DNA of 26,800 nt from Paramoeba atlantica (taxonomy: Eukaryota > Protista > Discosea): contig CDRNVI010000146.1 in the NCBI GenBank assembly GCA_977017575.1, positions 1-26,800 on the forward strand, read 5' to 3'. The notes beneath the pieces are model-generated. The model ran no database searches. It worked only from the letters and a program-made list of their open reading frames with translations, and was not told the origin of the DNA. This document shows, one piece after another, positions 3,473 to 26,800 of this stretch. Numbering within the stretch: the stretch's first letter is position 1; the number at the start of each line of letters is the position of its first letter. Position numbers and translations under genes: made by a program.

Positions 3473-3515
3473 GACAGCATATTCGACTGGTCATTCACCA
3501 GTCGAATATGCTGTC
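3473..3515. repeat. Perfect inverted repeat: 19-bp arms, 5-nt loop
   Basis: gacagcatattcgactggt (3473-3491) - cattc - accagtcgaatatgctgtc (3497-3515); the arms are exact reverse complements. Confidence 0.95.
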
Positions 3516-3648
3516 CCAAAATCGAAATAACAAAAAAAGAAAAGTGACCCCCCCTCGAAGCCTTTTACACTCCTCTTCCCTCTTGTCAAAATGGACGGAC
3601 TTTTATCTATTGGGATTTCCCCTGACCTGCAAAAAACGAGGAAAATAG

Positions 3649-3867
3649 TCAGAAAAAGACCATGAGTGCAGTCATTTTAACACCCCACAGTGCAAACCCC
3701 ACAATAAAGACCTAACTCCTGTGATAAACACTCCGCCCAAGTCCTGGAATCATAAAGTCCGGACTTCGAAATTTGTAGAAAGCCTCGACGACAAATGTAG
3801 ATTTGGATGTAATGCTAGAGAAACGCATTACCACTATCTAGAATGCCCTTACAGACGGAGTGTCTAG
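3649..3867 (+). mobile_element. Possible relic of a non-LTR retrotransposon ORF2 C-terminal zinc knuckle
   Basis: Stop-to-stop frame reads ...KSWNHKVRTSKFVESLDDKCRFGCNARETHYHYLECPYRRSV*. CRFGCNARETHYHYLEC (3796-3846) resembles the LINE C-terminal C-x1-3-C-x7-8-H-x4-C / 'CxxCxxxETxxHxxxxC' motif, but the H-to-C spacing is one short. No RT domain is visible nearby. Confidence 0.45.
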
Positions 3868-4738: not shown

Positions 4739-4833
4739 ATGGCTCAGAAAAGATTCTTTTGGGATGCAATTGAAAAGAGATCAATGAAAGAGATTCTCAA
4801 ACACAAGAAATCGATCTTAACTGCAAAGATGAG
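4739..4833 (+). pseudogene. Possible orphan ankyrin N-cap exon (frameshifted)
   Basis: MAQKRFFWDAIEKRSMKEILKH then, after a 1-nt shift at ~4804, QEIDLNCKDE followed by a GT donor (gtttct, 4834). This is the same repeat position as the phase-0 introns of the ankyrin gene at 17.9-21.6 kb. No downstream ankyrin exon was found. Confidence 0.3.
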
Positions 4834-4889
4834 GTTTCTCTTTTGTTTTTTAAAGGTCTTTTACTTTTTTTTTGTGAGGTTTTGTAGTG

Positions 4890-5450
4890 GGGAGTGAGAA
4901 GAGAGGAGAAGAAGAAGAGAGAGGAGAAGAGAGAGGAGAAGAGAGAGGGGAAAAGAGAGGAGAGAGAGAAAAAAATGAACAAAAAGTTTTTTCGATCTTT
5001 GGATTGTCGCGACCAACAACAATTTCAAAGATCGAAAAAACAAAAACAAAATCGAATCGAATTTTTCTCTCTCTCTTTTCTCCTCTCTCTTTCCCTCTCT
5101 TTTCTTTTCTCTTTTCTCCCTCTCTCTTCTCCCTTATTCTTCTTCTCTTTTCTCTCTCTCTTCTCCTCTATCTTCAAATTCTTTTCTGTGGATCTTCACT
5201 TTTTCTTTCTCTCTTTCTTTCTCTCTCCCTGCTCCTTTTGTTTGTTTCTTGGGTCGAAAAATTCTTCGGCCTGAAATGAAAGAAGGAGAGAAAAGCAAAG
5301 AAGAATGGAAAAAGGAGAAGAGAGAGAAGAGAGAAAGAGAGAGGAGAGAAGAAAGAGAGAGGAGAGAGAAGAAAGAGAGAGAAAAAGAGGGAAGAGGAGG
5401 GGAGCGAGAGAAAAAAAGAAAGGGAAAAAGGAAAAAAAAAGAGAAAAAGT
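4890..5450. repeat. Low-complexity alternating purine (GA) and pyrimidine (CT) tracts
   Basis: GA-rich ~4890-4980 (gagaggagaaga-like units), CT-rich ~5060-5240, GA-rich ~5275-5450. These explain the many E/R/K and S/L/F spurious ORFs. Confidence 0.85.
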
Positions 5451-5788
5451 GGGCCAAATACGCGTTTGCAGGCCGAAAAAAAAATTTGCATGCCACGTCA
5501 CCTTAGGAGAGGTCGCAAGATGGACCAAAAATGGAATTATTTTCAATATCCAATCAAAAAAAGACACGTCATCAAAGATGACGTCACCTATTTTTTGGCC
5601 GGCTATTTTGGGGAGATCCGAGTTAAAAAACACCAAAAAAAAGACCGGAAAAAAGGCAATGAAAAACGATGCAAAAAATTTTTGGCGAAAATAAGGTGTC
5701 ACGGGTTAGACAAAATTAAGGAGGAAGAACGTTTTTCTTTTTTTTTTTTTTGCTGACTCTTTTGTTTTTGTTGGTTTGGATTCCAGCA

Positions 5789-8700
5789 ATGAAGAACATT
5801 GGTTTGTTGCTGTTTTTTTCTTCTTTTGTTGTCGGATGTTTTGCGGTTCGTCCGGAACTTGTGGACAAGAAGATGTGGTTTGTGAATGATACAATCTTAA
5901 ACGTTGACTATGAGATGGCTGTGCTTGAGATGGAGTTTGATCAAGACCTTTACCTTTCCGGAGAAACTTTTCTGTGTGGGCGAGCTGAGCAAGATTGTCC
6001 AGTGACTAGTTGTACTCCTTGTGATTGGTCGTCTCAACAGGTTTTTTTTAATCCGCACACTTTTCCTTTTTTTTTTTCCCTCTTTTTTCAATTTTTTTCT
6101 GTTCCTGTTCAAATTAAAACTTTTTTTTTAAAGCCGTCCGGGTGCGATAATGTTAATTGCTGTGGTCCAGCCCAAGTTGGTGGATCGGCTTTGGATCAAG
6201 TCAATGATTGGTGTGAACCTTCCTCGACTCCTTATCATTCTTTGACGCTGAATGAAAAATCGCCAATCTTTACCGTTGAACCACGAGAGACATCCTATTT
6301 TCGTTTTTTCATTCCAGAAGAAGCCCATTGTAAGCCATTTCAAATTTTTATTCGTCCCTTCTATGGAGCGCCCACTTTCTCTCTCTCGAATCTGTATGCT
6401 TTTCCGACGACTGAAACTGCGCAGTGGAGAAAGGGGAGAGTCCCACCGAACTCTGGATGGGCCCAAAACTCGTTCGCGGTTTGCCCAAATGCCCATGCTG
6501 ATTATCAATTGGGAACTTACTCTCTCGCTGTTTTTTCTTGGTACAGTTCGTCTTTTTATGTTGAAGTCGTTGTTTCTCCCCAGGACTATCCCTTGGTCCC
6601 TCCTCCTGATAGAATCCTTTGTGCGGATGTTCCTGCTAGTGAGTTAACCGACGCACAAGCTGGGAGTAGTGAACCTGTTTTCTGTCTCCAGGATACTGAG
6701 TCGCTCCAATTGGATTATGATGAATCTCACGCAGGGGACAGGAATCAATTTGTTCTCCCACTCACGCCAGGTTTTTCTTACTTTTTCATTTTTTTTTTTG
6801 AACCTCAAAACTACTTTTTCTCTTTTTTTTTTGGGGGGGGGAGGGAAATTTTCTGAAAAAATTATTTGACTTGCTTTCTTTTTTGGGATACTAATTTTTT
6901 TTTTCCACAAAACAAGGGTGTCACCAAGTTTCATTTGCTGTCACCGGAACAGAGCCTGGTACCGATACGGATATCAATTGCCTCCCCAAAGACATCACAA
7001 GCACTGTTCTTGGTGCCAACTCCATGATTACACGAATTACTACAGGAGATGATCGTTTTACTTTCTCAGTGTGCTCTGAAGATGTTTCTTATCTACGATG
7101 TGCAGCTCAATTTTGGGTTCCAGGACCATCATCTTTGATTTTTTCCACAGTTTCTATTCCTTATCGGGTTCCTTTGGCCCCGACTACAACTACTCCATCT
7201 GCGGGAATAACTTATCAAGAAGGCATAACTGCTGTATCCTCTGGTATTTTTGGGATAGGGAGTTCCCCATGCTCAGATTTCAATTCTGTCTGCAAAGAGT
7301 GGATTGTACCTCCAATTTCTGACCCTCTGATCTTCTGGCCTCCTCCTCCACAGATCCCAAAAATTGACACTGAAAATACAAATGTCTATCAAGACTATTT
7401 CGATGCAACAAATGCCCAGCCACTCGACAACACTTTAATTATTGTTCTTACTTTAAAAGCTGGGACACAAGTGATCTACGAACGCTCTGAACTGGACAAG
7501 GTCGCTATGGCAATTATGTATGTCACCAACGAATTTGGTGAGCCTCCTCTACTTCCCAACAATGCAATTGATCTCAACGAGAAGACTCAAGCCTCGCCGA
7601 GTCAGTACTTATCAACAATTTCGCTCTCTTCCTTCCCGGTCGTTAATCTTGCAGAACTTTGTGATCAAACGAGTTATGACACACTCCAAAATGTTGTGAA
7701 TTCACAGTTAACGGAAATTCTCGAGTCAGATTCACCACAGACCATTGAATTTCATAAAGTTTGTTTATTTATTTATTTAAAAATAATAGAGAAACAACTG
7801 ATTAACTTACTAAATCAAAATCATTTCTTCCTTTTCTCCACACACAACACACACACAACACACACACACACACACACAGTATGTTTTGGACATCTTAAAT
7901 GCTGGGATTGCTGGTACTTCTTGCACACAGGCTGCAATCGAAGCGATGAATGTTCGTCTTGAGAATGTCACCCTCGTGGATTATGATATTTGTCCACCGA
8001 CCGAAATCGAAAGAGAAGAGGAGCAGTTTACAACTGCAGATGTTTCTACATGTGGCGTCCCTGAATGTGCTGAGACATATTTTGAAGATCTTGCACAAGC
8101 TTTAAATAATGTGGATAATCTTGCTCAAGGGTGTTCCTCTGGTGTCCAGGTCTTTTTTCTGTTTCCTCCAATTTTTCTTCTTCGTTTCAAGAATTTCTTT
8201 TTCTATTTGACTTCATTTGAATTTTTCTAACGTTTTGTTCTCTTCCTGCAGGATATTCAATTTGAGTTAGCCTCTGTCGTAGAAAAGCAATTGGAGAGAG
8301 TTGTAAGAGATTGTCTCAATCAAGTGGGGCTTGGCGGTATGTTTTGAATTGTGTTTAACCCATCCTCTCAAAAAAAAAAAAAGAAAACTAATCTTCAAGT
8401 TAATTTTTTCCCTCTCTTTCTTTTGTGACACAGATGATTTCATGGGGATTGATTGCTCAGCTGATTTTGAGTGTGCACAATGGTCTGGGAGGTGCAATCA
8501 TCAAACAAAAAAATGTGTGATTGGAACCTTATCAGAAGTTGAAGATGCTTACCTTCAATGTTACATCTCTAAAATGACTTCCTCATTGGAGGACTATCTG
8601 CGTCTCAATGTCCTTCCTCCAGAAGCAGCTTCTGCACCTACTGATTCTGAACTATTTTTTCTGGGATTAAAATCTGCTGCTTTAGTGGATGATTGTATTA

Positions 8701-11681
8701 CAGCGAACGATCCCTTGGATATTTCCTTGCGATCACAGTATGTTTGGACTGCTTCAGTTACATGCAAAGCAGGCATTCTTGGCCTTCCTGCGGATGATGT
8801 GGAAGGTGTCAATGCTCTCTGTCCTCCTGGATATTGTCTTGGAACGTCTTGCAGACAGAGCACAGCACAATGTTATCGATCTTGTGAACCACTTTATATC
8901 TATCACCCATCGTCTGAGGCTGAGTGTGATTTGTCCTCGACTGTTTGCCCAGTGACAGAACTTCCTGCTGGTACTTGTGACGGGAACTATTGTGTGTATT
9001 GCCCTGGAGAAAACGAAGAAGATTGTCAATATGTGCCTGGTAATCAAGATTTTTGTGAGAATACAGTGGCTTGTGAATTGGAAGATGGTTCAGTTGTCTT
9101 TGGATTGACTGAGAGTGAGTGCGATGCACAAACTGGGTATTGTTCTGTTGACTGTCCAGGGGAAAGCTGCCGCTCTTTGGACGGATTGGATGGTACCTGC
9201 TTAGCGACTGTCAGTTCTGAGAGTCTTTGTGATGACATTAATAGTATTATTGGGGTTGATGCTATTTGGTATGAAGATACTATTTGTGTTATTTCTGCTC
9301 AAAGTGAATCCACTTGTGCTCAGGTTTCAATTTTTCTTTTCAAAAGTTTGTCTCAAAAACAAACAAAAAAGAAACTAGTTTCTTTCTCTTACCTTTTTTT
9401 TTAAAAAAATTCATTAATTCATCCTCTGCAGTTATCCTCGACAATTTCTGCCCCTACAACTTGGGAAACATGCGAGTCCCTCTCAACAACAGAATGTGAT
9501 GGAAGCGATCCATACCAAAGATATTTGAAATGTTACGTTGATTTATGGCACACATGCACTTCTCGAGAAGAGTGTGAAGGTTCTGGGCAATGTACTGATC
9601 AGTCTTGGACAACAATTGTTCGATCTGCTGAACACCCTATTGATGTTCAATTTGGGGCGTGTTTTATATCTGGATTCATTGTGCAAGCGGGTTTGGGAGG
9701 TATTTTTTGTTTTATTTCAACGGATCGCCCTGGAATTGGATGTCGACAGCATGCTGTTCTGGCTCCTGATGCTTGTTCTGGAGCTTCTTTCTATCAGTAT
9801 GCGTGGCTCACTCCAGCGATGAGTGAAGCGGAATGTGTGAACAAAAATCAGGGTCGTTATGGATGTCAGATGCCAGAAACCGAGAGTAGTTTAGTTTGGT
9901 ACGATGATGATGAGTGTGAGTGTCAGGGTGGAATTCCTATGTATAGGTGGGACTGGACGGATGGTGTTTGGAGTAATGGAGTCTCGCGAACACTTCAATG
10001 GAGGGAAATAATTCAACCAGTTCAAAAGTATGAATGGTCTCCTTCCTTGTCTTTTGAACTTTTACAGACATGGTTGGAAAAAAATGAAGAGCAGAGATTT
10101 TCTTTTGCTGTGAAATCAGAGGTGATTTGTGAAAATGGGTATGTTTCGTCTTCTTTGAATACTTTGGTCTGTGATTGTTTTGGTTCCAATGAGACGACGC
10201 AAGGACATAATTCCCAATGCTATGATCAAACGGGCGATCAAGTGGAAGAGTTAGTTGGTCTCTCTGGTGCCTGTTTCCAAGAACAATCTTTTCTAAAAGG
10301 TCCATCTTCACGACTTTCTTTTGGGATGGATAGTATTAGTAGTGGATGTTCGTTGGCGAATCTATCGATTGTCTCAGAAGCTTGGTTTGCTGTTCCTCCA
10401 CCTCGCCCAAGTGTTTCGTTTCAATTTGAAAAGAAACCACAACGGGGAATTGTATTGAATAAGAAGGGTGCAACGGTTGGTGTTCTTCGTGGGGATGGGA
10501 GTGTGTTTAGCTTTTCCACTTTGGAAAATGTGGTTTCTTTTTCTGTCTGCCTTCTGATTAGTGATAATCAGACAGATACCACAAGCTACCCAATCCAGGA
10601 CTTTGGTTATTCAAACAAGCCCATTGGAACTATTTTTCCCCTTGGATTGACAGATATCAATTCAACAATCGTCATTGGTTCTCTGTTTTGGTGCGGGACT
10701 ATTGTTGTTGATGATGTTCCCTTAGATGGAAACAATATTCGATTGTTTCCAATCCAACGAACCGAAAACTATGAAACTGAGGAAGAAGATTATACTTCTC
10801 GGAAAACACGTGCTTTGATGTATACATTGGGAGTGTGTTATTGCATCTGCTTTGTCTTACTCTCTTTCTATTTGATTAACTGCATTCGAAATCCTACCAA
10901 AGGGCAAATGTTGATGATCATCTCGGCTTTGTTTGTCATCCTCTGTGTCTTCCGTGCTGTTTTCATGTTTGGATATCCCAATGGAATTTTTGAAGGAAAC
11001 GAACTTGCAGAGTTTGTTGTTTTTGAGATTCCAACTTTCCTCCTTTTCAGTGTGGTGATTGCGTCGATCTTTTTCTGGAAAAGGCTTGCGAGTAGAAGCA
11101 AATTTTTTGGAGGAGATTCTGCCAAATTACGAGGAGCGATTGTTTTAGGGTTGTTGTTGGTATGGTCTCTCTGGGTTGTTGTTACAATTATTTACTCTGA
11201 GGTGATTCTTGAAGAAAATACGGAATCACCTTGTCCTGGACGAGTTGCCCCTTCTTATGAACAACAAGAAAAGGATACTCGAACGTTGACCATCATTTAT
11301 CAGTCGTTAATCATTTCTGTGACGTTTGTTCTTGCTGCTATTTTCTGCTTTTATTCATATTCTTTGATCTCTCTTTCGAAGAGAGTCAGTCGATCGAAGC
11401 GGTTTGTGATGGTGATTGGAGGAACTATTGTTCTTTCTTTCTTTGTTCGATGTGTTCTCTTTATTATTATTTTGGCGGTGGAGTTTGTTTCCTCGGTTTA
11501 TATGTTTCTCACTTTGATGATTACGGAAGTTCTTCTCCTCTTCTTCTTGCAGCTTCAATTTAACTCCAGTAATTTCCGATCTCTCTTAGGAGGGTCATCA
11601 ACTGGATCTACACTGAATGATACAGTTGGACGTACAACTGGACATGTGACCAGTAAAGGCGGATCTCTGATGGATGATTGA
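5789..11681 (+). CDS. Large Cys-rich cell-surface protein with C-terminal 7TM domain (TOM1/THH1/GPR137-like), ~1741 aa, 7 exons
   Basis: Exons 5789-6040, 6134-6770, 6917-7758, 7880-8149, 8252-8336, 8434-9323, 9432-11681; all GT..AG with consistent phases (5226 nt). Signal peptide MKNIGLLLFFSSFVVGCFA. Seven hydrophobic segments lie at ~10812-11556. TM3 'VFEIPTFLLFSVVIASIFFW' and TM6 'LSFFVRC' resemble the plant TOM1 / DUF1084 patterns 'DLPxLLFFSxYxLLxLFW' and 'CFLIRC' (family assignment from motif recall, not a search). Confidence 0.85.
7839..7878 (+). repeat. Imperfect (CA)n microsatellite at the 3' end of 7TM-gene intron 3
   Basis: cacacacaacacacacacaacacacacacacacacacaca runs into the cag acceptor at 7877-7879. 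Confidence 0.85.
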
Positions 11682-12319
11682 TTTGAGAGGTGGTGTGTGT
11701 GGAGGCAATTGAGAGAGAGAGAGACAGAGAGAATTCTTGTGGAAGAGAGAGAATTTTATTTGGTTTTTGGGCAATTTATTTGGCTCTGAAACTAATTTTT
11801 TTGATTAAATTTAATTTTCATTTTTTATTTTTATTTTTTTGTTTTTGTGCCAAGGGTCTCAGAGAGAGAGTTTGGAGAAAAAGAGAGAGAAGAAAGAAAG
11901 ATGAAAGGGAGTCCAAAGCATCCACTGAAAGAAGAGAGACATTGTAGAGAAAGAGAGATTGGCAAGAGAAGATCAAGAGAAGAGAGAGGTTGAGGGAGGG
12001 AGTTTAAAACAAACCTTTTTGCAAGCCAATTATTTTCTTACTCTTTTTCCAAGACAGAAAATGGAAGAGCTGGCGAGACAGAAGAAAAGAGAGAGAAAAA
12101 AGAAGAAGGGAGAAATAGAGCAAGAAGAAAAAGGGGGAGAGGGAAAAGAAAGGGAAAGGAAAAGGAAAAAGAAATAGAGATTTAGAATATTCCAGGAATT
12201 TCAAAGAAAGAGAAAGAGAGAAGAGAAAACCACAAGAAAAAAAAACCACAAGGACAAAAAAGAAACGGTCAGGATAATGAGGATCTGGGCTCTTCCAGTT
12301 GGAACCCCTGCTGAATCCT

Positions 12320-12365
12320 GATCTCCCAAATTTGATCCCCAAATTTTGATCCCCAAATTTTGATC
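12320..12365 (+). repeat. 14-bp minisatellite, ~3.3 copies
   Basis: gatctcccaaattt / gatccccaaatttt / gatccccaaatttt / gatc, intergenic. Confidence 0.8.
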
Positions 12366-13312
12366 TGGAAACACTTCTCTCTTCAACTCCTCCCAGAGAA
12401 ACCAACGAGAGGTGACGACAATGGGGGAACAAGAGTTCAAGAGATGGAAAAAAGATCGACCAAAGCCAAAGCCCAAAACACAAAACCCAAAACACACAAA
12501 AAATGGGGTTCTTTTTTAGATGTTTTTTATGATAGTTCCGAAAAGGTGAATAATTTTTTTTTCAGGCTCTTTAAAATTTTTGCGGACCCACATTTTTATC
12601 GCATTTTTTTCGGCCCGAATTTTTATCGACAGAAGCACATTGGTACCAAAAAAATCAAATCTTGTTGTTTTTGCTGTCTTCTCTTTTTTCCCCAGTTCAA
12701 TCTCAGGAACCACCCATTTTCACTTCTCTTGCCCACTTCCTCAGCTGTTCAGTTTCAGGAGAGGAGTTTTCAGACACATCATCTTTTCCGCATAAAAGAC
12801 AAATTCATTCAAATCAAAATTCATTCAAATGAAAAAAACCTATGATATCGACGTGAACAAAAAAATAAATGTGAACGAAACCATTTTCAAGAAAGATCAC
12901 CAATTTCTTTTTTCTGTTTCTTTTTTTTCTAATCTTTCCAATTCACCAATTTTAAAGAGAAAAAAACTTAAACAACCCCAAAAAAATCTTCAAAAAACGC
13001 AAAAAAAGTCGTTACATTTGAGTTCTCAAAAGGGAAAAGATCTTCACAATCGAGACAACCGAAAATTTTTCGGTTGTCTCGATTGTGAAGTTTGGATTAG
13101 GGCGCCATTTTACCGCGAATTAGCCACGAAAAATCTGGCCGAAAAAAATAGTTTCGCTGAAAATGAGGGACGGACGAATTTTGTGACTCCTAAGGACCCC
13201 CGTACTTTCAGCTCAAATATTTGTCGGAAAGTCCATACCGACGTCACAGTAATTCACAAAAAACAAAGCCCAATTTATTAGAAAACAAAAAACGAAAACA
13301 GAAAATCAAACG

Positions 13313-16104
13313 ATGAAACCGTTAGACGACGAGAGTGGAACGGACTTCAATGAAGAAGCTGGGACTCATTGGACTCTGAGATTGTCGAAGAAGTATGTCC
13401 TTACCGGCGCCATCTTCTTTGTTCTTTGTTCTTGTGTGGTTCTTGTTGTTGTTGCTGGCGTTGGCCGTCAACATGACGCTCAACCACAAAATGACGCAAA
13501 GTAAGATATTCTTTTCTCTTTCTCCCTTGTAATTCAGTTCTGACAAATTGATTACAGAGATTTATCGACAACCTGGAATGACCATGATGAGGATGGCGAG
13601 GAGGAGGATGATGACCGCGAGGATGATGACCGTTATGGTGGTGGCCATGGTGGTTGGCGCGATCGTGAAGGAAAGTACCGAAATGGAGCGGTTGCTTCTG
13701 AGTCTCCCCTTTGTTCTACTATGGGAGCTGAGATCATGGAAAACGTATTTTTTTCTTTCTTTCTGTTCACCCCAAAAGAGGAAACTGATTTTTTTTTCGA
13801 AAGGGAGGAAATTCAATCGATGGAGCGGTAATGACTGATCTCTGTCTTGGAATCGTCCATTGTTTTGCCACTGGTGCAGGAGGTGGTGGTGTTATGTTAA
13901 TTCTCCATGAAGAGTAAGAATTTTTTTCTTTCGGATTTTTTTTTTTCAGAAAACTAATTTTTTTTTTCGAAAAAGTGGGAAAGCTGAGGTATTGGATTAT
14001 CGAGAAACTGCACCTGGACTTTCAACTGCTGATATGTACGTTGTCAATGAATGGTCTTCTACTGTGGGTCCTCTTGCTGCTGGTGTTCCTGGTTCTCTTC
14101 GCGGACTGAAAGCAGGTTTTTTATTTGCGTTTTTGAATCACAAAACACACACACAAAACATACAAAAACGTCCTCCTTAGCAAAATTCGCAAAATTTTTT
14201 GTCTTTTTTCTCACTTTTTTTGTTGTCCTTTTTTGTGTGCAGTTCACGATCGTTATGGAACCACTTCTTGGGAAAGTTTGCTTCTCGCTGCTTCTGACTT
14301 GGCCGCTTCTTTTCCTGTTGATTCCTTGCTTGCTTCCCGCCTCCAATCTTCGGTTTGAATTTCTTTTGTTTTAAGATCGAGGTTGAAAACAGAAAAACTC
14401 ATTCGAACAACTCTCACAGGAAGAAGCCGTCTTGAGTGATCCTGGTTTTGCTGGAGTGTTTGCCCCAAATGGTGTTCTTTTACAAGAGGGAGAAACTTGT
14501 CATTGGACTTCTCTTTCTGAGACTTATGCGACTATTGCTCAGGATGGACTTGAAGCACTTTATGGGTTTCTTTTTCTCTCTCTTCTCTCTCCCCTCTCCT
14601 CTCTAATACTTTTTTCTAATTTTTTTTTTTGCAGAGGAGAGGTCGGTGAAAAGCTGATTGAAGATATGATTGCCAAGGATCCTGAATCTATTATGACTCT
14701 TGCTGACCTTGAGGTTTTATCTCTTTCTTCTTTCTCTTGCTTCTCTTTCTCTCTTTAATCGAAGATGAAAAATAGGGTTATGAGCCCGTTTGGAGAGATC
14801 CAATCGAGAGCACATACAAAGGCGACAAGGTTTATGGCGCTCCTCCTCCATTTACTGGTGGTGTCATCAATGCCCAGGCGTTGAATATCTTAGAAACTAT
14901 TTCTCTTCGCAGAACTGTAAGATCTGAACATTATTGGATTCAAAGTCTTTTGTTTGGATACAGTGATAGAACTGGTTTTTTTCTCTCTTTTTCTCTCTTT
15001 TTTTTTGTTCTTTTTTTTGTTCTTACTTTTCTTTTTTTAGGATTGGGAGATCCAGCCAGTGCTTATAATATTGAGAATAATATGTCCACTTACATTGTAC
15101 CAACAATGACAAAGAAGTGTCATGCTGCCGATCTTCGTGATCGTATTTCTCCAACTCAGACTTTCCCAGTCGAGTATTATGAAGATTTGGTGCCCCTTCA
15201 AGCTGTTGTTGAAGATCATGGCACTTCTCACTTCAGTGTTTATCAGAAAAGAGTTTTTATTTTTATTCCTTTTTTTTATTCCTTTTTTTTTATTCCTTCC
15301 TTCTTGTTTTTGAACACAATATTAACTTTTTCTTTCAAGGGGAAATCTGTTGCACTCACTTCAACTGTTAATTTCGCCTTCGGTTCAAAATTTATGAGTC
15401 CTCAGACCGGGATTATTCTTAACAATGAAATGGATGATTTTAGTACCCCTGGTGCTTCCAATGCTTATGGTTACCCACCTTCTGAAAGTAATTTCCCTGC
15501 CCCTGGTTCATTTTTCTTTTCTTTTTCCTTTCTTTTTCCCTCCCCCCTTTCTCACATTCTCCAAAAAATATAGGACTTCGCCCAGCATCTTCCATGTCCC
15601 CCTCAATTATTGCAACCACAAAACGAGACAAAACAATCCCCCGTTTGATCTATGGAGGAGGAGGTGGTAGTATGATCATCTCTGGCACCTTGTCCGTGGC
15701 TCTTCGTCATTTGGAGCTGGGATTTAAACTTCAGGATGCCATCAATACTCCTCGTCTTCATGTTCAGTTGCTTCCAGATTTTGTTTTTTGGGAACCTGGT
15801 TTTTATTTTCCCCTTGCTCTCTCTCTCTCTCTCCTCTCTCTCCCCTTAATTATTGAATTATGATTTTAATTTTAAACAAATAGATTATCCTGAACAAAAT
15901 AGGGACCGCCTCGTTGAGTATGGGTACAACTTTTACCCTTTTCCTTTTGGTGGTGCTGTTGTTCAAGCAATTTCCTTTAATGGTTTTTTTTCTTCTTCTC
16001 TCTTCCCTCTCTTCTCTTTTTCTCTTTTCTCATAAAGATAAACAGGATACACTATTACTGCTGCGTCTGATAAACGAAAGAATGGTAAACCAGCTGGTTA
16101 TTAA
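13313..16104 (+). CDS. GGT: Gamma-glutamyltranspeptidase / glutathione hydrolase (type II membrane anchor), ~639 aa, 13 exons
   Basis: Exons 13313-13500, 13558-13744, 13804-13913, 13976-14115, 14243-14352, 14420-14565, 14635-14713, 14776-14974, 15041-15252, 15340-15505, 15574-15798, 15884-15982, 16046-16104 (1920 nt, in frame, all GT..AG). Motifs: GAVASESPLCS, GGNSIDGAV, GAGGGG, DYRETAP, VPGSLRG, SDRTGLGDP, autocleavage/nucleophile Thr in G|TSHFS (15223-15225), TSTVN, NNEMDDFS, RPASSMSP, PRLHVQ, ASDKRKNG..AGY*. Single N-terminal TM segment YVLTGAIFFVLCSCVVLVVVAGV. Confidence 0.95.
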
Positions 16105-16583
16105 ATAACCCCTATTTTTTTCAAAAAAATAAAGAGTTTTGATGAATAAATAAATACTATTTCAAAAACCCTGTTGTTTCTTTCTTTCCCTTTCTTTCTC
16201 TCTCTCTGTGAAGGTGGTTGAGGTTTGATTTGTACAAGAAGAGGAGAGAGAGAAAAGCAAAAGAAAACTGGAAAGTAATCTCCAAAAGGAGGTACATCCT
16301 TCCAAGACCAAGATGCGACAATTTCAAAGAAGAATTTCCGTCATTAACCAAAAACACAGAGCAGTGGCGAAAAATCATCAAATGGGGAGGAGCTGGAATT
16401 AATATTTCATCAATAAAATCAACACAAGGAAGAATTCCAATGAATAAAAATTCATGCAAGAGCAGGGAATTTGAGAGCAAGCGAACATCCCCAAAGAGGT
16501 TCACCAGCATACATTCAGATTCGAAAAGTACTAATTCAATCCAGAATTACTTCAAAGAATATCAGGACTATCAGAGCAAATGT

Positions 16584-16626
16584 ATGACTGTTGTAAATAA
16601 AAAAAAGAATTATTTACAACAGTCAT
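16584..16626. repeat. Perfect inverted repeat: 17-bp arms, 9-nt loop
   Basis: atgactgttgtaaataa (16584-16600) - aaaaaagaa - ttatttacaacagtcat (16610-16626). Confidence 0.95.
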
Positions 16627-17881
16627 CCAATGGCAACCATAAATTGAATCAAAAGAGGAAGGTTGATCAGGGCTTATCTCAGTTTCAACAATAAAATCTG
16701 TAAGCGTGAGGCGAACATCAACAAAGACTAATTGAAATAACAAGAGGAATCACGAATGATTTGCAAATAGAGTCATCAATCACAAGATCCGTGCAAACAG
16801 TGAAAAATGTCTAAATGACATCACATGAAGCAAATGATATTGAATGATAAATGGTGATGAGAAAGCTGAAATTGTCCAAAATGTTAATTCCAAACAATTT
16901 GCTGTTCCAAAGCAGAACCAAAGAGAAAGAACCAAATCAAAAACGAGAGAGGAGACTGAATCAATTACCAACAAAAATAAAGCATGGAAATTATCAGGGA
17001 AGCGTCTCGAGCGAACCAAAGGACAGAGAATCCAAAATCTGGAATAGAAAGCAGTTGGCTGAAACAGATTATCTTGTCTGACATACAGGGGGAAGTTGTC
17101 TTTTTCCCAGCAGCCTCATCTTCCGGTGGTGTCTCCCCTGATATCTCCTCCCTTCTCAAATCGCTTGCTTTAATCACTCTACAGAATGGGAAGGTCATGG
17201 ACAGCAATCCATTGCAGCTCTTCTTGAAGACAGCCAAAGAGGAAGATATCAGCTGCTTTAATGAAAGCAATGGCTGTCCACATGGCCAAGGTGCGAGAGG
17301 CACTAACCCCAGCAGATTCGAATTTGTGGCATCACTCTTTCTCTTTCACTTCTTGCATCAATCCCAACAACATATTTCAACCCCTCCCTCTTCTTTCCCA
17401 AATATAATTCCCCCTTTTTCTTCTCACCCTGCAGTTCCTTCTTCCAGTGAAGGAGGCCCAAGGAAATGCCTGATCGCAGTATGATTCTCAGACCCCCAAA
17501 AAAAGAAGAAAAAAAGAAAAGGTGACATCACCAACAATTTTTGAACATTTTTGTTCTCTCCTCTTCAGGTCACCCAAACCAAAACTGTGATCAACAAAAA
17601 ACCACAAACCAATCATCAACAGCACCCCCCCCCTCTCTCCCTTCTTCTCTTTCTTCCCCAAACCAAGCTTCTTCTTCTTTTTCTTCTTTCTCTTTCTCTT
17701 TTTTCCTTTTTTTTTCCTTTTCCAGTTGGAAGTCACTTTTTCGATCGAAACCTTCTGTTGTTCATAACAGGGAAATGTTAATTTCTCTGATCTGAATTGT
17801 TCGTCTGAAAGAAAGAAAAGAGAGAATAACAAAATCTTGAACAAGAAAGAAAGGAAAGAAAGAGAGAAAGAGAGAAAGAGA

Positions 17882-20800
17882 ATGGAAGAAGAAAACCGAA
17901 AAAGGAAGAGAGAAGAGGGTTTTTCCCAAGATACAAAACAAGTTCGAAAGGGGAATAAACAGATTGGAGAAGAAGAAGAAAGAGAAGAAGAAAGAGAAGA
18001 CGAAGACGAAAGAGAAGACAAAGACGAAAGAGAAGACAAAGAAGAAGAAAGAGAAGAAGAAGAAGAAAGAGAAGATGAAGAAGAAGAAAGAGAAGACGAA
18101 GAAGAAGAAAGAGAAGATGAAGAAGAAGATTCATTTCTGGTTCATTGAACTTTTTTTCTTTCTTTTTTCTTTCTTTTTCTTTTTCTTCTTTCTTTTTCTT
18201 CTTTCTTTTTTTCTTGTTCAAGAATTTGTTATTTTCTCATTTAAGTTTCATTTTTAATTTTTATTTCAATTGAAAAAAACAGAAAATACTTGAAAATTGT
18301 TTGCAAAAAAGTGTTGAAGAAATTTCTTCCAAAGAATTGGAAATGGTTCATTTTCAAATCGAAAAAGAAATCGAAAAAGAAAGAGAAAAAGAACAATCTT
18401 TTCAGATTTTCAACACTCCTTTGAATCATGTTTTTCTTTTTTTCTTTTTTTCTTTTTTTCTTTTTTTCTTTTTTTCTTTTTTTCTTTTTTTCTTTTTTCT
18501 TTTTCTTTTTCTTTTTCTCTTTATTTCATTGTTTTTTTTTGAAACTTTTTCCTTTCCAAAGGGTGGAGAAACTCCTCTTTATGTTGCTGCTAAAAATGGA
18601 CATAAACAAATTGTTCAACTTTTATTGGAAAAAGCACACCCAAATGTTAATCTTGTAAATAATGTACTTCTTCTTTTTTTATTATTATTTTGAATTTGTT
18701 TTTTGGATTTTGGATTTTCTTTTTCTTTCTTTTTCACTTTCTCATTTTTCTTTTTTCTTTTTTCAATGTAAAGAATGGAACAACTCCTCTTTTTATTGCT
18801 GCTCAAAATGGATATGACCAAATAGTTCAAATTTTATTGGAAAAAGGAAAACCAAATGTTGATCTTGCAAATAAGGTTCTCTTCTCATTGTGATTCTTAT
18901 TTATGAAAAAGAAATTTCTTTTCTTTTTCTTTCTTTTTTTTCATTTTTTTTTTTTCATTTTCTTATTTTTTGCTTTTTTTTTTATCTCAAAGAAAGAAGC
19001 AACTCCTCTTTTTATTGCTGCTCAAAAAGGACATGAACAAATTGTTCAACTTTTATTGGAAAAAGGAAACCCAAATGTTGATTTTGCTGTAATGGTTCTT
19101 CTATTTTTATTATTATTTTTTTGAATTTTGTTGATTTGGTTTTTTTTCTTTTTCACTTTTTCTTAAAAAAACATTTTTTGGGTTATTTTTTTTTTCATTT
19201 TCTTTCTCTGTTTTTTGGTCTGTAGGAATATGGACAAACTCCACTTGATGCTGCTGCTTTTCGAGGACATCATCAAATTGTTGAACTTTTATTGGAAAAA
19301 GGAAAAGCAAATGTCAATTCTCAAAGAAAGGTTTTTTTTATCTTTTTATCTTTCTTTACTTTTCTTTTTTTTTTTCTTTTTGAAAAATAATTTTTGAATG
19401 AAAGAGAGTTTTTTTTTTGTTTTTGTGATGATCAAAAAAAGAAAAAGAAATCAAAAAAGACAAATATTTGAAATATTTTTTGTGTCCAACTTAAAAAAAA
19501 ATACTTTTTTCATTTTTTTTCCCTTTTTTTTCCTTTTTTTTTCCTTTTTTTTTCCTTTTTTTTCCTTTTTTTCTTTTTTCTTTTTCTTTTTTTCACTTTT
19601 CTCTTTTTTTTCATCAAAAGAATGGGGCAACTCCTCTTAAAATTGCTGCTCAAAAAGGACATGAAAAAATTGTTCAAATTTTATTGGAAAAAGGAAACCC
19701 AAATGTTGATCTTACAGATGAAGTTCTTTTTTTCTCTTTATTATTATTTTCATTTTATTGATTTTAGTTTCTTTTTCTTTTTACTTTCTCATTTTTCGAT
19801 TTTTTAATGTAAAGAATGGAGTAACTCCTCTTTATATTGCTGCTGAAAAGGGGCATGAACAAATTGTTCAAATTTTATTGGAAAAAGGAAAACCAAATGT
19901 TGATCTTGCAGATCAGGTTATTTTATGTATTGCTTCTTTTTTTTTCATTTTCTTTCATTTTCTCATTTTTCTATTTTTTAATGTAAGGAGGGAATAACTC
20001 CTCTTTTTATTGCTGCTCAAGAAGGACATGAACAAATTGTTGAAATTTTATTGGAAAAAGGAGAAGCAAATGTTGATCTTGCAACTGAGGTTATTTTGTT
20101 GATTGCTTTCTTTTTCTCTTTCTTTTTCTTTTTCTCATTTTCTCATTTTTTTCTTTTTTTTTTTTTAAAAGAATGGAGCAACTCCTCTTTTTATTGCTGC
20201 TCAAGAAGGACATAAACAAATTGTTGAAATTTTATTGGAAAAAGGAGAAGCAAATGTTGATCTTGCAACTGAGGTTATTTTGTTGATTGTTTCTTTTTCT
20301 TTTTTCTTTTTCTGTTTTTTTTTCACTTTTTCATTTTTCTATTTTTGAATGTAAAAAGGATGGAGTAACTCCTCTTTATATTGCTGCTCAAGGAGGACAT
20401 GAACAAGTTGTTGAAATTTTATTGGAAAAAAGAGAACCAAATGTTAATCTTGCAGATCAGGTTATTTTGTTAATTGTTTCTTTTTCTTTTTTTTTTTTTC
20501 ACTTTTTCATTTTTCTATTTTTTGATGTAAAGAATGGAGTAACTCCTCTTTATATTGCTGCTCAAGGAGGACATGAACAAGTTGTTGAAATTTTATTGGA
20601 AAAAGGAAAACCAAATGTTGATCTTGCAAATCAGGTTATTTTATTGATTATTTCTTATTTTTCTTTTTTTTTTTTCACTTTCTTATTTTTTTATTTTTTT
20701 TAATGTAAAGAATGGAGTAACTCCTCTTTATATTGCTGCTCAAAATGGATATGAACAAGTTGTTGAATTATTATTGGAAAAAGGAGAACCAAATGTTGAT

Positions 20801-21635
20801 CTTACTAATAAGGTTCTTTTGTTTGTTTTTTTTTCTTTTTTTTTTTTACTTTCTCATTTTTTTTTTTTTTTTTTTTAAATGTAAAGAATGGAGTAACTCC
20901 TCTTTATATTGCTACTCAAAATGAACAGAAACAAATTATTGAATTATTATTGGAAAAAGGAAAAGCAAATGTTAACCTTGCAACTAAAGTTATTTTGTTG
21001 ATTGTTTCTTTTTCTTTTTCTTTTCTTCTTTTTTTTTTAATTTTTTTTGATTTAGAGAGGCTGGACTCCTTTTCACAGAGCTGTTTCCAGTGGTTTTGAA
21101 GAAATTATAAAGATTTTGATTGACCATAGAGCCAACATTAATATTCAAACCAAAGTTTTTATTTCCTTTTTTTTGATTTCTTTTTTTCTTTTTATTTGTT
21201 TTTTCTCATTTTCTTTATTGTTATTATTGATTATTGGTTGTTCTGAGGTGATGAAGGAAAGTCTTAATTTCCTTTTGATTTTTTTTTTGATTTTCAACCT
21301 TTTTTTTACTGTTGTTTTGTTGATTTTGTGATTAAGGGTTGTAGAAGAGTGGTTTTTTGTTGAACTTTCTTTTTTTTTTTGTTTAGAGTGGTAAGACAGT
21401 TCTTGATGTTGCCACAAATCCAAAAATTGTTGATTTGATCATTCAATTGAAGGTTTGATTTTTTTTTTCTATTTTTTTTAAGATTGTTCTTTTTTTTTCT
21501 TGCAATTTCTTTTTTTTTAAGTTTTGTTTGATGTTTTTCTTGAATAATTGAGTGTGAACTTTCTCTCATTGTTTTTTTTTTTTTTGATTGTAGGGACAAA
21601 CTATAAAACCAGCCCAAACAAAAAAAGGAACTTAA
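17882..21635 (+). CDS. Ankyrin-repeat protein, ~612 aa, 17 exons, one ankyrin repeat per exon (13 full repeats + C-cap), acidic N-terminus
   Basis: Exons 17882-18139, 18283-18429, then repeat exons 18562-18663, 18774-18875, 18993-19094, 19226-19330, 19621-19722, 19815-19916, 19988-20089, 20172-20273, 20359-20460, 20533-20634, 20711-20812, 20887-20988, 21056-21154, cap 21387-21452, tail 21594-21635 (TAA). All 16 introns are GT..AG, phase 0. Consensus NGxTPLYIAAQxGHEQIVEILLEKGxPNVDLAxx. Linkage of exons 1-2 to the repeats is less certain than the repeat exons themselves. Confidence 0.9.
17969..18130 (+). repeat. Coding GAA/GAT-rich repeat (E/D-rich tract, REDEEEE-like units) in ankyrin-gene exon 1
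   Basis: 54 codons, of which 44 are E/D, 8 R and 2 K (hand count). Confidence 0.85.
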
Positions 21636-22068
21636 CCCTTTAGTGAGTGGCCTAGATCTAGGCATTCAGTGTTATTTTTGCCTTTTGACAGTTTGTCCTG
21701 AAAATTCCATCAAAAACACTATCAAAAAGCTTAACAAGACACCAAAAGACCTTTAGAGAGATTGAAAGCACTGGCTCAAATACCTCTTAGCTACCAAAAT
21801 TAACAAATAAAGAAGTGGTCCAACAACTCTGAGGTTGCTAACCTCTTGGTGACTGAAATGAATGTTAGTGATATATTTTCTGCAATTTTTGAATCTTCTC
21901 TCTGACTTGAACTTAAGCTGAGTCTTCAATGCACCACTAACATCAAAGCCTCAAAGAGATCCCCCTGATCACTTTGATCCTGACCCACTTGGTTCTGATG
22001 ATTCTTCTGGCTTTGATGATTCTGGCAATTCTTTTGATGAATTTTCATCAGATGAAAATGAGATTGAG

Positions 22069-22650
22069 TTGTACCCTCAAAAAGTCTATAAAGATCTGAT
22101 GAAGGAGCAATACCCCTTTGATGGAACCAAGAAGAAGTATTGGAAATGGAAAGATGACATCACAAATCATTTGGATTCATATGGTTTAACAGAGTATCTA
22201 CTCATTCCAGTTCCTCAAGTCCACTGCATGCAATTGGCAATGCATTTTAATGCAAAGAAGGTCTATTGCTTTCTGTTTGTTTGTCTGCAGCAGAATATAA
22301 AATTCAAGATTGCTATGCTCTTTTACAAGCATAAGCCCCACTGTGTTTGGCTCAAGTTGGAAGACAAGTATAACAAGAAAACAATGGCATCTTTGCTGGA
22401 CCTCATGAACAAGTTGATGACTTTGAAAAAGAAGGAGAATGAAACTGTTAATAACTATGTATTCTGAGGTATGACTCTTGCAAAAGAATCTGCTGAGAAT
22501 GATGAACCTGTTTCTGAACACCATATGATGGCTCTTCTTCTTCAAAGCCTTGGTTTTGAGTTCCAACCCATGGAGACACTCAAATATCTTTTGTTTTCAT
22601 TTGTTTATGTTGGAAGAAAAGAAAGAGTTTTAAGTTCTGTTCAAAGCTAA
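22069..22650 (+). mobile_element. Degenerate Ty1/copia-type LTR-retrotransposon gag fragment
   Basis: PFDGTKKKYWKWKDDITNHLDSYGLTEYL (FDG at 22117) resembles the copia gag N-terminal 'FdG.nY..W...m...L...gL..yl' motif. VWLKLEDKYNKKTMASLLDLMNKLMTLKKKENETVNNYVF*GMTLAKESAENDEPVSEHHMMALLLQSLGFEFQPM resembles Retrotran_gag_2/UBN2. There is an in-frame TGA at 22465-22467. No pol or LTR was recognised. Confidence 0.75.
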
Positions 22651-23609
22651 AAAAAAAATTAGGTTGGTTCAAAGAGACTTTTCTTGTCCAATCTGATTTT
22701 CTTTTCTTCACCCACCATGTTGGTGAAACCCTGCTTAGTTGAGTGCTTCAAAGAAATTTATTATATCTAGTGGAAAGAGTACATCCTCTTCCCTTAAGAA
22801 CTCTCAGTATGGGTCCCACTCCTCCTTGTATTCTAAGAATGAACAAAAAAATGCAAATCAAAGTGAAAATTCTAAAGAAATCCCAACTAAATCAATCTTA
22901 AAGAAAGTGTTTGAGGAAGGATGGTGGTCATGAGTTGAGAAAGAAATACCAAAGACCTTGTTTCATTGTTAGGTTGTGAGAGTGTTTTGACTCTCAAAAA
23001 TGCTTCTTGATTTGGTGTTGTTTTGTTGTTTCCTCTGCATTTTCCCAATTAAGGAGCATTTTGTTTTGTCCAAATTTATATTTTATTATGAATTTGGTTT
23101 GTATTGCTTTTGTTGTACTTTGAGCAGAAGTTGTAGATATCATAGTAAATTTAGGAAATTTAAACCAATCTATTTCCTTGTTCTATTTGTATTAGTAGTA
23201 GAGATGCACCACTCTGTACTTTCATATTGGAACTGAGGTTAACCCTATGAAGAACAATACAACAATTCACTCCATTTTTGTAATGAGTTTCTTTTGGTTC
23301 TATGAGGAAATGCCAAACTATTAGAGAGCAATGGCCACACTCAATAAAGTTCCAAAGCTGAGAGGGAACTTTCTCTTGCAAGTTATGAAAGGTCATCTCA
23401 ATGTGGTCACATTCAACAAAGAAGTGTGTGAACCTTTGGAGAAAGTTATTTTAGAAAATGGTTCCTTCCTTGCAGTCAGTTTTGGAAAGCCTTTTGTCTG
23501 AAGAAACAACTAGGATTGAAATTTATGGAGTTTTAAACTTTGTATTCCCTTTTTAATCAAAGGAAAGAATCTTTTGCTTGAAAAGATAATTTTTTTTTGT
23601 TTTTTAAAA

Positions 23610-23707
23610 CAAACTTTATTCAATTAGTAATTTTTAATTTAAACCATTTGAATTACATTAAATTATGTTTGTTTTTAACTTTTAACAAAAGGTGAAGTTT
23701 TAAACTT
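23610..23707 (+). repeat. 98-bp direct repeat, copy 1 (copy 2 at 25814-25911)
   Basis: Ungapped manual alignment, 91/98 identical. Confidence 0.95.
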
Positions 23708-25813
23708 CAACTTATAACAAGAGTTTTTATCAGATCCATGGGAGTTATTCCATATCTAGCAATTTTTTAATAAAAAAGAGTGAGTTAGGGCATTAAAATA
23801 AACAATAGTGTCCTTGGTGTTACTTTTAGAAAGTTAAAAATTTTATTTAAAATAAAATATAGTCCTCTAAATTTTTGTTAACTTTTCTTTTTCATTTTTC
23901 ATCTCTCTTTTCCTCATTTTTGAATTGCTTTTTCTTTCTGTTTTAACAAAGAACTTTCATCAATTTCTTGTTTGTTAGTACAATTGAGTGGATTGAAATC
24001 AAGTGTCTTCACTGTTGTTTCAGTTTGGTTTCTTCAACATCCATCATAGTCAGGACAGCCAAAGGTTTGCTTGAATCAACTGGTGAAATCCCACTGGAAG
24101 CAAAAGAACTCTTGATATTTTCTTCAGAACATGCAAGATATAGAGAATAACAATATTTACAAAGGATTTGTTTTTATTGCTCATTTTTTGTGACCCTATT
24201 GATTTTTTTTCACTTCTTCTTAAGTTCACTTTTGAAAACTTTGAAGACTGTCTGATCAAGTGGCTGGAGAAGGTGCAATGTGTGAAATAGCATTGTAAGC
24301 ACAACAACATTGTTTTTTTGCAACAATTCAATAGTCTCAGGATTTCCACAGGAACTGTGGCTATCAAAAAGGAAGAGAGCACATTTATTTGGCTTGTGAA
24401 ACTTTGATCAGCACTGCTTTAGATCTGAGAGAAAAACTTTTTTGATTATTTCATAGAAGATCTTCTCATTAATCTAACCTTTTGCTTGTTTTAACTAATG
24501 AAAACTCTTTATGATTTTATTTGAGAGAAAAGGTCAATTTTTTAAAGGGAGAACCACTCCAGAAATACTATAACTTTCATCAGCCCAAATGAATTGGAGT
24601 AAGGTAATGTGTTTTTTATTTTGAATTATCTTTTTGATAACTCTCTTCTTATTATGTGGTGAAATCACTTGAAACTTTTGTGTCTCTATACATTGTAAAA
24701 AATTAATGAATTTTTTTGAAAAATTTATGAATTAAATCAATTAAGGTGATGATTCTATCCGAAAGAGACGAAAAACATCAAAGTATAAGGTGTTAAAAAA
24801 GAAACCTTTTGTTTTTTTTTGATTTTTTCAATTCTTTCTTTTGATTGTGGATAGAAAAGTGAAATAATCAATCCAGTGGTGTTGTTTTTAATAGTTTGTG
24901 AATAAAGAAAAAAGAAAAAAATAACAAACTAAAACATTCACTTGAAATATAGAATAAAAAAGTTCATTGGTAAATCAAACAATCTATCATGTATCTTTCC
25001 AAACCTTTCAACTCTTCTTTTCTTTCAATTTCTTTCTTTTCTCTTTTTGTTTTTCTGTTTTTTTCTCACTTGCTGTTTTTTTTTCCAAAAAAGAAAAAAA
25101 AAATCCAATTCCTAATCAAATATTGCTACATTATCTATTTTTTTTTTCTTTTTTTAGTTTTTTTTTTTGGTTTTTTATTTTGAATAGTTTTTTTTTTCTT
25201 TTTTGTTTGTGAGAAAGAAAGAAAAAAAGAAAAAAAAAGAGAAAGAGAAAGATTCAACAAAAAAGAGAAAAAAACAAAAAAAAATAAAGAAAAAGGATTG
25301 TATGACCAAAATTGATTGAAAAGATCCAAATACAAACCAAAAATAAGATTAAAGAAGAAAAAAAGAAAAAAAATTGAATTTATATTGGTCCTATCTTGAT
25401 GGAAGCTTGAACAACTAAGAAAAAACAAGAACATTTGAATTCTTTTTCACCTCTTTGCCAAATTTCAAGAAAAAAAATCACATCCAAAATAAAAATCAAT
25501 TTTTTGGCAAAAAAATTTTTCTTTTTTGTTTTTTGTTTTTGTTTGATTTTTATGTTTGGTTTTTGTTTTTTGAAAGATGAGAAAAATAGACTTTTAGAAA
25601 TCAAGAGTTTTTTGATTTTTTCAATGTATCACTTTTATATTAAGAAAAAGAAACAAAAAACTAATCGATTTTTTGTAAAGTGAAAAAAATAAAAGAATTC
25701 ATAAAGTTTATCGAATGATTCAATTCTTCAAGGTCTCTTCTTTCTTTTCTTTTTTTCTTTTTTTTCCTATTTCTTTTTTTCTTTTTTTCTTTTTTTTTTT
25801 TTTTTTTTTGAAG

Positions 25814-25911
25814 CAAACTTTATTCAATTAGTAGTTCTTAATCTAAGCCATTTGAATTACATTAAATTATGTTTGTTTTTAACCTCTAACAAGAGGTGAA
25901 GTTTTAAACTT
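25814..25911 (+). repeat. 98-bp direct repeat, copy 2 (telomere-proximal)
   Basis: Ungapped manual alignment to 23610-23707, 7 transitions. Confidence 0.95.
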
Positions 25912-26027
25912 TAGTTTAGTTCAGTCAATCTTTATGCTGAACTTTTAGAACTTCTGCAAGTTCAGGCTGGAGGATGCACATTAGAAGGGAGAATAATCCA
26001 AAGCTCCTTCCAAGGGAATTTATCTAA

Positions 26028-26800
26028 TTAGGGTTTAGGGGGTTAGGGTTTAGGGTTTAGGGTTTAGGGTTTAGGGTTTAGGGTTTAGGGTTTAGGGTTT
26101 AGGGTTTAGGGTTTAGGGTTTAGGGTTTAGGGTTTAGGGTTTAGGGTTTAGGGTTTAGGGTTTAGGGTTTAGGGTTTAGGGTTTAGGGTTTAGGGTTTAG
26201 GGTTTAGGGTTTAGGGTTTAGGGTTTAGGGTTTAGGGTTTAGGGTTTAGGGTTTAGGGTTTAGGGTTTAGGGTTTAGGGTTTAGGGTTTAGGGTTTAGGG
26301 TTTAGGGTTTAGGGTTTAGGGTTTAGGGTTTAGGGTTTAGGGTTTAGGGTTTAGGGTTTAGGGTTTAGGGTTTAGGGTTTAGGGTTTAGGGTTTAGGGTT
26401 TAGGGTTTAGGGTTTAGGGTTTAGGGTTTAGGGTTTAGGGTTTAGGGTTTAGGGTTTAGGGTTTAGGGTTTAGGGTTTAGGGTTTAGGGTTTAGGGTTTA
26501 GGGTTTAGGGTTTAGGGTTTAGGGTTTAGGGTTTAGGGTTTAGGGTTTAGGGTTTAGGGTTTAGGGTTTAGGGTTTAGGGTTTAGGGTTTAGGGTTTAGG
26601 GTTTAGGGTTTAGGGTTTAGGGTTTAGGGTTTAGGGTTTAGGGTTTAGGGTTTAGGGTTTAGGGTTTAGGGTTTAGGGTTTAGGGTTTAGGGTTTAGGGT
26701 TTAGGGTTTAGGGTTTAGGGTTTAGGGTTTAGGGTTTAGGGTTTAGGGTTTAGGGTTTAGGGTTTAGGGTTTAGGGTTTAGGGTTTAGGGTTTAGGGTTT
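26028..26800 (+). repeat. Telomere, (TTTAGGG)n, G-rich strand on +
   Basis: TTAGGG TTTAGGG GG TTAGGG (26028-26048), then 107 perfect TTTAGGG units + TTT from 26049 to the end of the window. Confidence 0.99.

Follow-up and report, generated by a model that had tools for sequence, protein, structure and literature searches.

The closest described counterparts of the gene analyzed here come from brown algae and fungi. Ectocarpus ROCO-LRR and NB-ARC-TPR genes provide the brown-algal comparison (Zambounis et al., PMC3341825; Teng et al., PMC11378527), and fungal NLR proteins have repeat domains, ANK domains included, with high internal conservation (Dyrka et al., PMC4986451; Podospora het-d/het-e). 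Repeat-protein genes that arose by local duplication of intron/exon modules are a known class (Street et al. 2006, described in PMC4585158 and PMC3995336), and DARPins are engineered ankyrin binders (PMC8683736). The present study concerns a predicted ankyrin gene of the amoeba Paramoeba atlantica, located in a 26,800-bp stretch of DNA (assembly GCA_977017575.1, contig CDRNVI010000146.1, positions 1 to 26,800), which is referred to below as the window. The gene probably belongs to a large inherited family of intracellular ankyrin binders whose diversity was generated by unequal crossover and gene conversion together with selection.

The gene model derived from the sequence comprises 17 coding exons and 16 GT-AG introns and predicts a protein of 612 amino acids, in which a basic and acidic N terminus is followed by the ankyrin array and a tiny IKPAQ tail exon. 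A first-pass annotation of this DNA had placed the gene at 18562 to 21154; the array is located there, but the gene is longer, with two more coding exons on each side. The description of the array as 13 consecutive one-repeat exons was accurate: eleven exons are 102 nt long, exon 4 is 105 nt long with one additional codon at its 5′ end, exon 13 is 99 nt long, and all 13, from 18562 to 21154, are bounded by AG and GT. Likewise, all 12 array introns are phase 0 and occupy the same repeat position. They range from 67 to 290 nt (67 to 131 nt except for one) with a GC content of 12 to 20%. The proposed interchangeability of the cassettes applies to about 10 generic units, which include exons 6 to 11 with differences of 5 to 15 of 102 nt, but not to exon 13, a divergent cap with 30% identity to exon 6, or to exons 1 and 4, which are special types. 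Queried singly, exons matched Pfam Ank (35.6 and 36.7 bits compared to a cut-off of 21.1), which identifies them as ankyrin repeats, and also matched PDB entries, among them DARPin chains; two C-terminal exons were concatenated for one tree only. The non-repeat exons, including the end exons, had no Pfam family match. Visual inspection of the exons revealed no hydrophobic leader or membrane segment, on which basis a receptor that is secreted or membrane bound was rejected. In the first coding exon, 50 of 86 residues are Asp or Glu.

The ankyrin introns are themselves predictions from the sequence. Their donors and acceptors resemble those of a neighboring seven-transmembrane (7TM) gene, to which the transcript support belongs and whose introns are confirmed by a transcript from the same organism. 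The end exons are supported by the closest other paralogue, designated L004, in which the first coding exon has the same start and the same exon end.

The array introns align with one another, and the region is a tandem repeat of ∼176 bp. Because the introns are homologous, their shared phase and position represent one ancestral intron event that was copied rather than 12 separate events. The common phase and position follow from module duplication, an established route to repeat genes, and require no special explanation. Phase 0 as a sign of design was rejected, as exon symmetry arises from unit duplication alone.

Paralogues were obtained from ENA assembly ERZ24900291, whose contig L001 corresponds to window positions 1 to 16398 at 99.95% identity and which most likely comes from the same culture as the window. 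Homologue searches detected related arrays, as genomic read-through open reading frames, on about 60 contigs of differing length, so the paralogues anticipated in the first-pass annotation exist in large number. Nine paralogue-bearing contigs were fetched and their exons extracted, which yielded 19 arrays of 3 to 43 exons. Where readable, family genes have a basic and acidic start exon and a tiny end exon of the form GQT[IRV]KPA[QR]..KK.., and the KPA-type tail was present in every family gene with a readable end. The L004 gene carries ten differing internal units between ends that it shares with the window gene (nucleotide identity of 94% for coding exon 2, 95% for the first repeat, 85% for the capping exons, and 98% for the tail).

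The stop codon of the window gene (21633 to 21635) lies 4,393 bp from the start of the telomere array at 26028, as had been estimated. However, proximity to a telomere does not appear to be required. The fetched family loci did not reach telomere repeats (checked for six), and the arrays of L004 and L008 sit 20 to 40 kb inside contigs of 95 to 100 kb, so members also occur away from chromosome ends. The length of 34 amino acids and the TPL(Y/F) motif, which had been taken to mark a distinctive subfamily, are not exclusive to it: 18 of 154 family repeats have 33 amino acids, 8 of 154 have TPLH, and both 34-amino-acid spacing and TPLY/F were common in a set of 150 unrelated ankyrin proteins. The LLEKGxPNV motif was absent from the same 150 proteins. 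A profile search of 1.84 billion representatives recovered only long generic ankyrin proteins, a family-specific DNA pattern had no match in metagenome contigs, and no paper on Paramoeba ankyrin families was found in the literature library that was searched.

Several further arrays were observed. L005 contains a single 43-exon ankyrin array (8530 to 16032), four exons of which are off-frame by 1 to 4 nt, due to decay or assembly error, and a 15-exon array of a 33-amino-acid subfamily adjoins it. On L003, the minus strand of positions 1 to 2404 has ankyrin exons and, after them, a faint match to a RING finger; this may be an ankyrin-RING ligase beside the family gene. A protein scan of metagenome contigs gave intronless, apparently unrelated ankyrin arrays; such arrays (L012, L016, and L028 to L031) have a similar 33-amino-acid consensus and the same variable positions.

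Variation among the repeats is concentrated at exon positions 1, 3, 7, 11, 12, and 32 to 34. These positions fall in the beta-hairpin and inner helix, which make up the face with which ankyrin repeats bind (PMC4986451). Among 154 repeats there are 153 distinct peptides, and 150 of the 154 units have distinct binding faces. The positions randomized in DARPins agree with these variable sites, and the DARPin chains among the PDB matches, which vary at positions matching 3, 11, and 12, are consistent with this correspondence.

Selection was evaluated with a fixed-site codon model in which binding and core codons shared one silent rate, a shared rate that separate-partition fits lack. The ratio of nonsynonymous to synonymous change (omega) at binding codons was 5.61 in the window, 4.58 in L010, and 3.99 in 30 other units (p ≤ 1e-7), compared to 0.45, 0.28, and 0.34, respectively, at core codons, where omega was significantly below 1 (L010, p = 0.002; family, p = 0.0002). 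Nonsynonymous divergence (pN) at binding codons was 0.32 to 0.42 versus 0.07 to 0.14 in introns and a synonymous divergence (pS) of 0.06 to 0.07. The variation consists of first- and second-position changes at structurally defined sites, and Leu codons are position specific, which indicates that silent sites are not saturated. As judged from these codon models, amino acid change at the binding face is under diversifying selection, with the predicted gripping residues changing ∼5-fold faster than silent sites. In this respect, the diversification of a binder proposed in the first-pass annotation is supported.

A recent change in unit number was evident in a second copy of the gene, on contig L003, which has 14 repeat exons rather than 13 and different upstream genes. 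The extra 174-bp exon-plus-intron unit lies between exons 9 and 10. Its exon is a hybrid of exon 10 (at the start) and exon 9 (at the end), and its two flanking introns differ from each other at 2 sites; thus, it is not an assembler's duplicate. The simplest history is that the window copy lost the unit by crossover between two near-identical exons. Gain in L003 is less simple because two intron changes would then have had to follow, although divergence in the rest of the tract is only 0.2%. This difference, and the range of array sizes across the family, are in line with the variable repeat number that had been predicted.

The window and L003 share a longer segment, within which a tract with sharp edges covers just the gene and has 10 substitutions in 4.3 kb (positions 18730 to 18772 excluded), compared to 32 to 36 substitutions per kb in the flanks on both sides. 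The first coding exon also has a 21-nt in-frame insertion or deletion between the two copies. In the downstream flank, 58 of 63 differences are transitions within a CpG-free copia relic and may reflect methylation-driven decay. The upstream flank has an ordinary spectrum of differences, which suggests that the tract arose by a recent conversion the size of the gene or as a patchwork of blocks that were exchanged. Point changes within the gene and 3.5% divergence in the flanks mark the two copies as separate inherited loci. At the left edge of the shared block, positions 16157 to 17500 are rich in stop codons, have no Pfam match, and are probably a decayed gene or element. The ENA contig that matches the left part of the window stops at 16398, where the two versions join.

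Exchange between genes was suggested by exon 4, which forms a clade with exons of L008, L010, and L011 (support, 99); a 3′ intron motif is common to them as well. In contrast, in a tree of terminal exons the window pairs with L004 (97/97), and a clade of the four genes that bear exon 4 is rejected (approximately unbiased [AU] test, p = 0.002). This conflict points to a cassette swap between genes, and for at least this one cassette the expected discordance between exon trees and gene trees is present. The nearest neighbor of an exon was in the same gene for 42% of 163 exons (10% expected by chance) and in another gene for 58%, a pattern in which local duplication and either inter-gene mixing or convergence on common alleles both act.

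Recombination also takes place inside exons. Across the family, linkage between variable segments falls with distance, so that close segments are linked and distant ones are not, and a test of the pairwise homoplasy index (PHI) type was significant for 32 units of L005 (p = 0.0005). Diversity is therefore also built below the exon level, and whole-exon shuffling accounts for only part of it. A role of phase-0 cassettes as the unit in which diversity arises was not supported; in addition, crossover between aligned exon-plus-intron units preserves the frame at any phase.

The inherited binder family that we consider the probable explanation can be described as a series of steps. An ancestral repeat with one phase-0 intron was amplified as a tandem exon-plus-intron unit of ∼175 bp, as the homologous introns show. 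Recombination between misaligned units, both inside one gene and from one paralogue to another, adds or removes whole units, as seen once in the window versus L003, and the tree conflict suggests that it also swaps cassettes between genes. Crossovers or conversion inside exons generate patchwork repeats, as the family-wide statistics show. Homogenization would hold the framework, silent sites, and introns alike, and selection favors amino acid change at beta-hairpin and inner-helix positions, as the codon models show. Such changes would be inherited through the usual recombination of mitosis or meiosis rather than through dedicated machinery, because no recombinase, reverse transcriptase, or signal sequences were found. 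The basic cluster, and the lack of a visible signal or membrane segment, suggest that the protein acts inside the cell, probably in the nucleus. There it might grip fast-changing foreign proteins of viruses, bacteria, or a symbiont; we regard a role in conflict as about evenly balanced. The KPA tail could serve to pass bound proteins on to a partner common to the family; the tail exon is carried by the family, and docking is the function we infer for it. Membership among SOCS or F-box adaptors (ASB/SOCS-box, ANK-F-box/PRANC) was rejected, as the tail is a 13-amino-acid KPA peptide after a half repeat and the end exons have no Pfam match, but the protein may still work in an adaptor-like manner. 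A more ambitious version, which we consider unlikely, is that the family supplies the variable recognition arm of an undescribed intracellular defense of amoebae, in which many nuclear "natural DARPins" would be renewed by gene-sized ectopic conversion and unit gain or loss and plugged to a common effector through KPA, with proteins of giant viruses, bacteria, or symbionts as their targets. If so, units might turn over so rapidly that clones from a single culture differ.

Several observations weigh against the inherited binder family. Single-ratio codon fits gave omega values of only 1.45 to 1.6 (F3x4), recombination inflates omega tests, and silent variation at binding codons was ∼2-fold that of the framework. 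The exon tree was poorly resolved and did not reject the window exons as a single clade (AU p = 0.17), the PHI-type test fell short of significance when restricted to the 12 exons of the window, and one gain and two losses could explain the sharing of exon 4. Off-frame or stop-bearing units were present in 6 of 19 arrays, where errors in a low-coverage assembly are possible. No spliced family transcript was found in homologue or metagenome searches, which is a weak negative, and the array is almost free of CpG, as is typical of methylated repeats. On the other hand, two circumstances named in the first-pass annotation as speaking against diversification, a lack of paralogues and a constant repeat number, are the opposite of those found.

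The CpG profile bears on the alternative that the arrays are mostly silent, methylated, minisatellite-like DNA that drifts in transposon-rich subtelomeres, with its pattern due to conversion and mutation bias. In the array and in the transposon relics, the ratio of observed to expected CpG is near 0, compared to 0.5 to 0.6 in the neighboring upstream genes, and other family loci have the same dip, which suggests methylation-driven decay of repeats. From 19799 to 24759, which covers the array end and the copia and DDE relics, there is no CpG over ∼5 kb. Such silent DNA would also be expected from the predominance of C/T transitions among flank differences, the broken units, and the lack of a transcript. 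However, the 5′ exons retain CpG, and the 612-amino-acid frame and all 16 GT-AG introns are intact in both copies. Core codons are constrained, and the variation falls at first and second codon positions of structurally defined sites. Thus, silent drift appears quite improbable.

Another possibility is that skipping of symmetric exons is the main source of protein diversity, as for the LRR exons of brown-algal ROCO genes. All repeat exons are phase 0 with lengths that are multiples of three, an alternative acceptor of exon 7, 3 nt farther downstream, is also in frame, and skipping has been reported for tandem LRR exons in brown algae (PMC11378527). However, exon symmetry already follows from unit duplication, the introns are short, and no pairing elements were found beyond low-complexity A/T matches. 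Exon skipping is comparatively low in amoebozoans, in which intron retention is dominant (PMC6142364). Furthermore, genomic diversity is near saturating already, with nearly every unit presenting its own binding face, and a leading contribution from skipping is very doubtful.

Programmed somatic assembly within a cell lineage (as in VLRs, or by targeted recombination of the kind put forward for Ectocarpus) is highly implausible: two versions one unit apart in apparently one culture (L001 matching the window, L003 in the same assembly) and a gene-sized homogenized tract would fit it, but the gene is complete with no donor cassettes seen, the introns lack inverted or orphan cassettes and signal-like repeats, no recombinase or reverse transcriptase is linked to the gene, and the two versions are separate inherited loci. 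A diversity-generating retroelement was ruled out, as there is no reverse transcriptase open reading frame in the window and variation is not adenine specific (by consensus base, the rate of change was 0.13 for A, 0.155 for C, 0.107 for G, and 0.054 for T). A recombination-signal system was rejected because no signal-like repeats were found.

Table 1. Features of the ankyrin locus and its surroundings in the window
Feature	Position	Strand	Remarks
Coding exon 1	17882-18139	+	Start codon; RKRKR basic cluster (resembling a nuclear localization signal), then acidic Glu/Asp run
Coding exon 2	18283-18429	+	49-amino-acid charged segment, probably helical; no known domain
Ankyrin exon 1	18562-18663	+	First-position type
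Ankyrin exon 2	18774-18875	+	
Ankyrin exon 3	18993-19094	+	
Ankyrin exon 4	19226-19330	+	Distinctive cassette; common to L008, L010, and L011 genes with part of 3′ intron
Ankyrin exons 5 to 12	19621-20988	+	Exon-plus-intron tandem array
Ankyrin exons 5 to 8	19621-19722, 19815-19916, 19988-20089, 20172-20273	+	
Ankyrin exons 9 to 12	20359-20460, 20533-20634, 20711-20812, 20887-20988	+	
Extra-unit site	20359-20634	+	One more unit in L003
Ankyrin exon 13	21056-21154	+	C-terminal capping repeat, 33 amino acids
Terminal half-repeat exon	21387-21452	+	22 amino acids; kept in all family genes examined
Last coding exon	21594-21635	+	Tiny, GQTIKPAQTKKGT-stop; KPA-type tail, family-wide
Segment shared with L003	16291-23627		Upstream context differs between window and L003
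Near-identical tract versus L003	17476-21775		
Copia-type long terminal repeat (LTR) retrotransposon piece	21900-23627	+	Decayed; gag at 22069-22467
Pogo-type DDE transposase piece	23929-24684	-	Decayed; 88% to DDE_1 locus in L004
TTTAGGG telomere array	26028-26800	+	

In the copia relic (window 21901 to 23627 compared with L003 11660 to 13378), transitions occur at former C residues in CC, CT, and CA contexts, with CC over-represented, and the relic appears to have been hypermutated outside CpG. An element end of ∼120 bp is present twice, at 23590 to 23715 and 25795 to 25920, with differences that are mostly C/T and G/A; L003 has a longer copy in the opposite orientation.

The 7TM gene (5750 to 11752) encodes a protein of 1,741 amino acids with a cysteine-rich extracellular part and a 7TM region (TOM1/THH1-like). 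Identity between its exons and a JGI transcript is about 100%, ∼18 close relatives are present on other ENA contigs, and the nearest named relatives are in Paramoeba aestuarina. The other neighbors, a sulfatase gene and a gamma-glutamyltranspeptidase gene at 1029 to 2959 and 13313 to 16105, are ordinary.

Compared with these known systems, the Paramoeba gene resembles the Ectocarpus genes in having one repeat per symmetric phase-0 exon, a repeat number that varies between recent duplicates, intra- and intergenic recombination with birth and death, and diversifying selection on the repeats, which here carries the caveat of recombination. It differs in that the repeats are ankyrin rather than LRR or TPR, the host is an amoebozoan, the introns are short and homologous, and no ROC-COR or NB-ARC domain is present. 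Inverted noncoding cassettes occur in the Ectocarpus introns but not here; the window array has no minus-strand or orphan unit, and minus-strand matches at other loci are separate genes. Splicing variants are reported for the brown-algal genes.

High internal repeat conservation, hypervariable concave-face sites, and length polymorphism are shared with the fungal NLRs. In contrast to the NLRs, each Paramoeba repeat is on its own exon, and the protein has no NACHT, NB-ARC, or effector domain; it is predicted to be a stand-alone binder with a basic and acidic head and a KPA tail. Membership in the NLR or ROCO families was rejected because ROC-COR, NB-ARC, and NACHT domains are absent. The gene falls within the module-duplication class of Street et al., insofar as that class is described in the two later papers, as its exons are exact repeat multiples with one intron position and homologous introns. 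Relative to that description, the duplication here is both recent and ongoing (the DNA identity of units is 75 to 95%), and it is accompanied by strong diversifying selection across a large family.

An amoebozoan thus appears to follow the same recipe as the candidate immune receptors of fungi and brown algae, in a stripped-down binder without a known signaling domain. The process appears to have been caught in action, in a one-unit gain or loss, a gene-sized homogenized tract, and a cassette that crosses gene lineages. If expressed, the family would offer a natural library of ankyrin paratopes that is ready for use, and an entry point to the recognition of viruses and symbionts by free-living amoebae, which has been little understood. 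The resemblance to DARPins is one of structure and not of descent: both have a constant self-compatible framework, caps, and variable paratope positions, but the Paramoeba array is natural, with a 34-amino-acid unit, 12 internal repeats, and variation at the position of the TPLH histidine. By analogy, the gene is best viewed as a case, in an amoeba, of the repeat-receptor strategy that had previously been described in fungi and brown algae.

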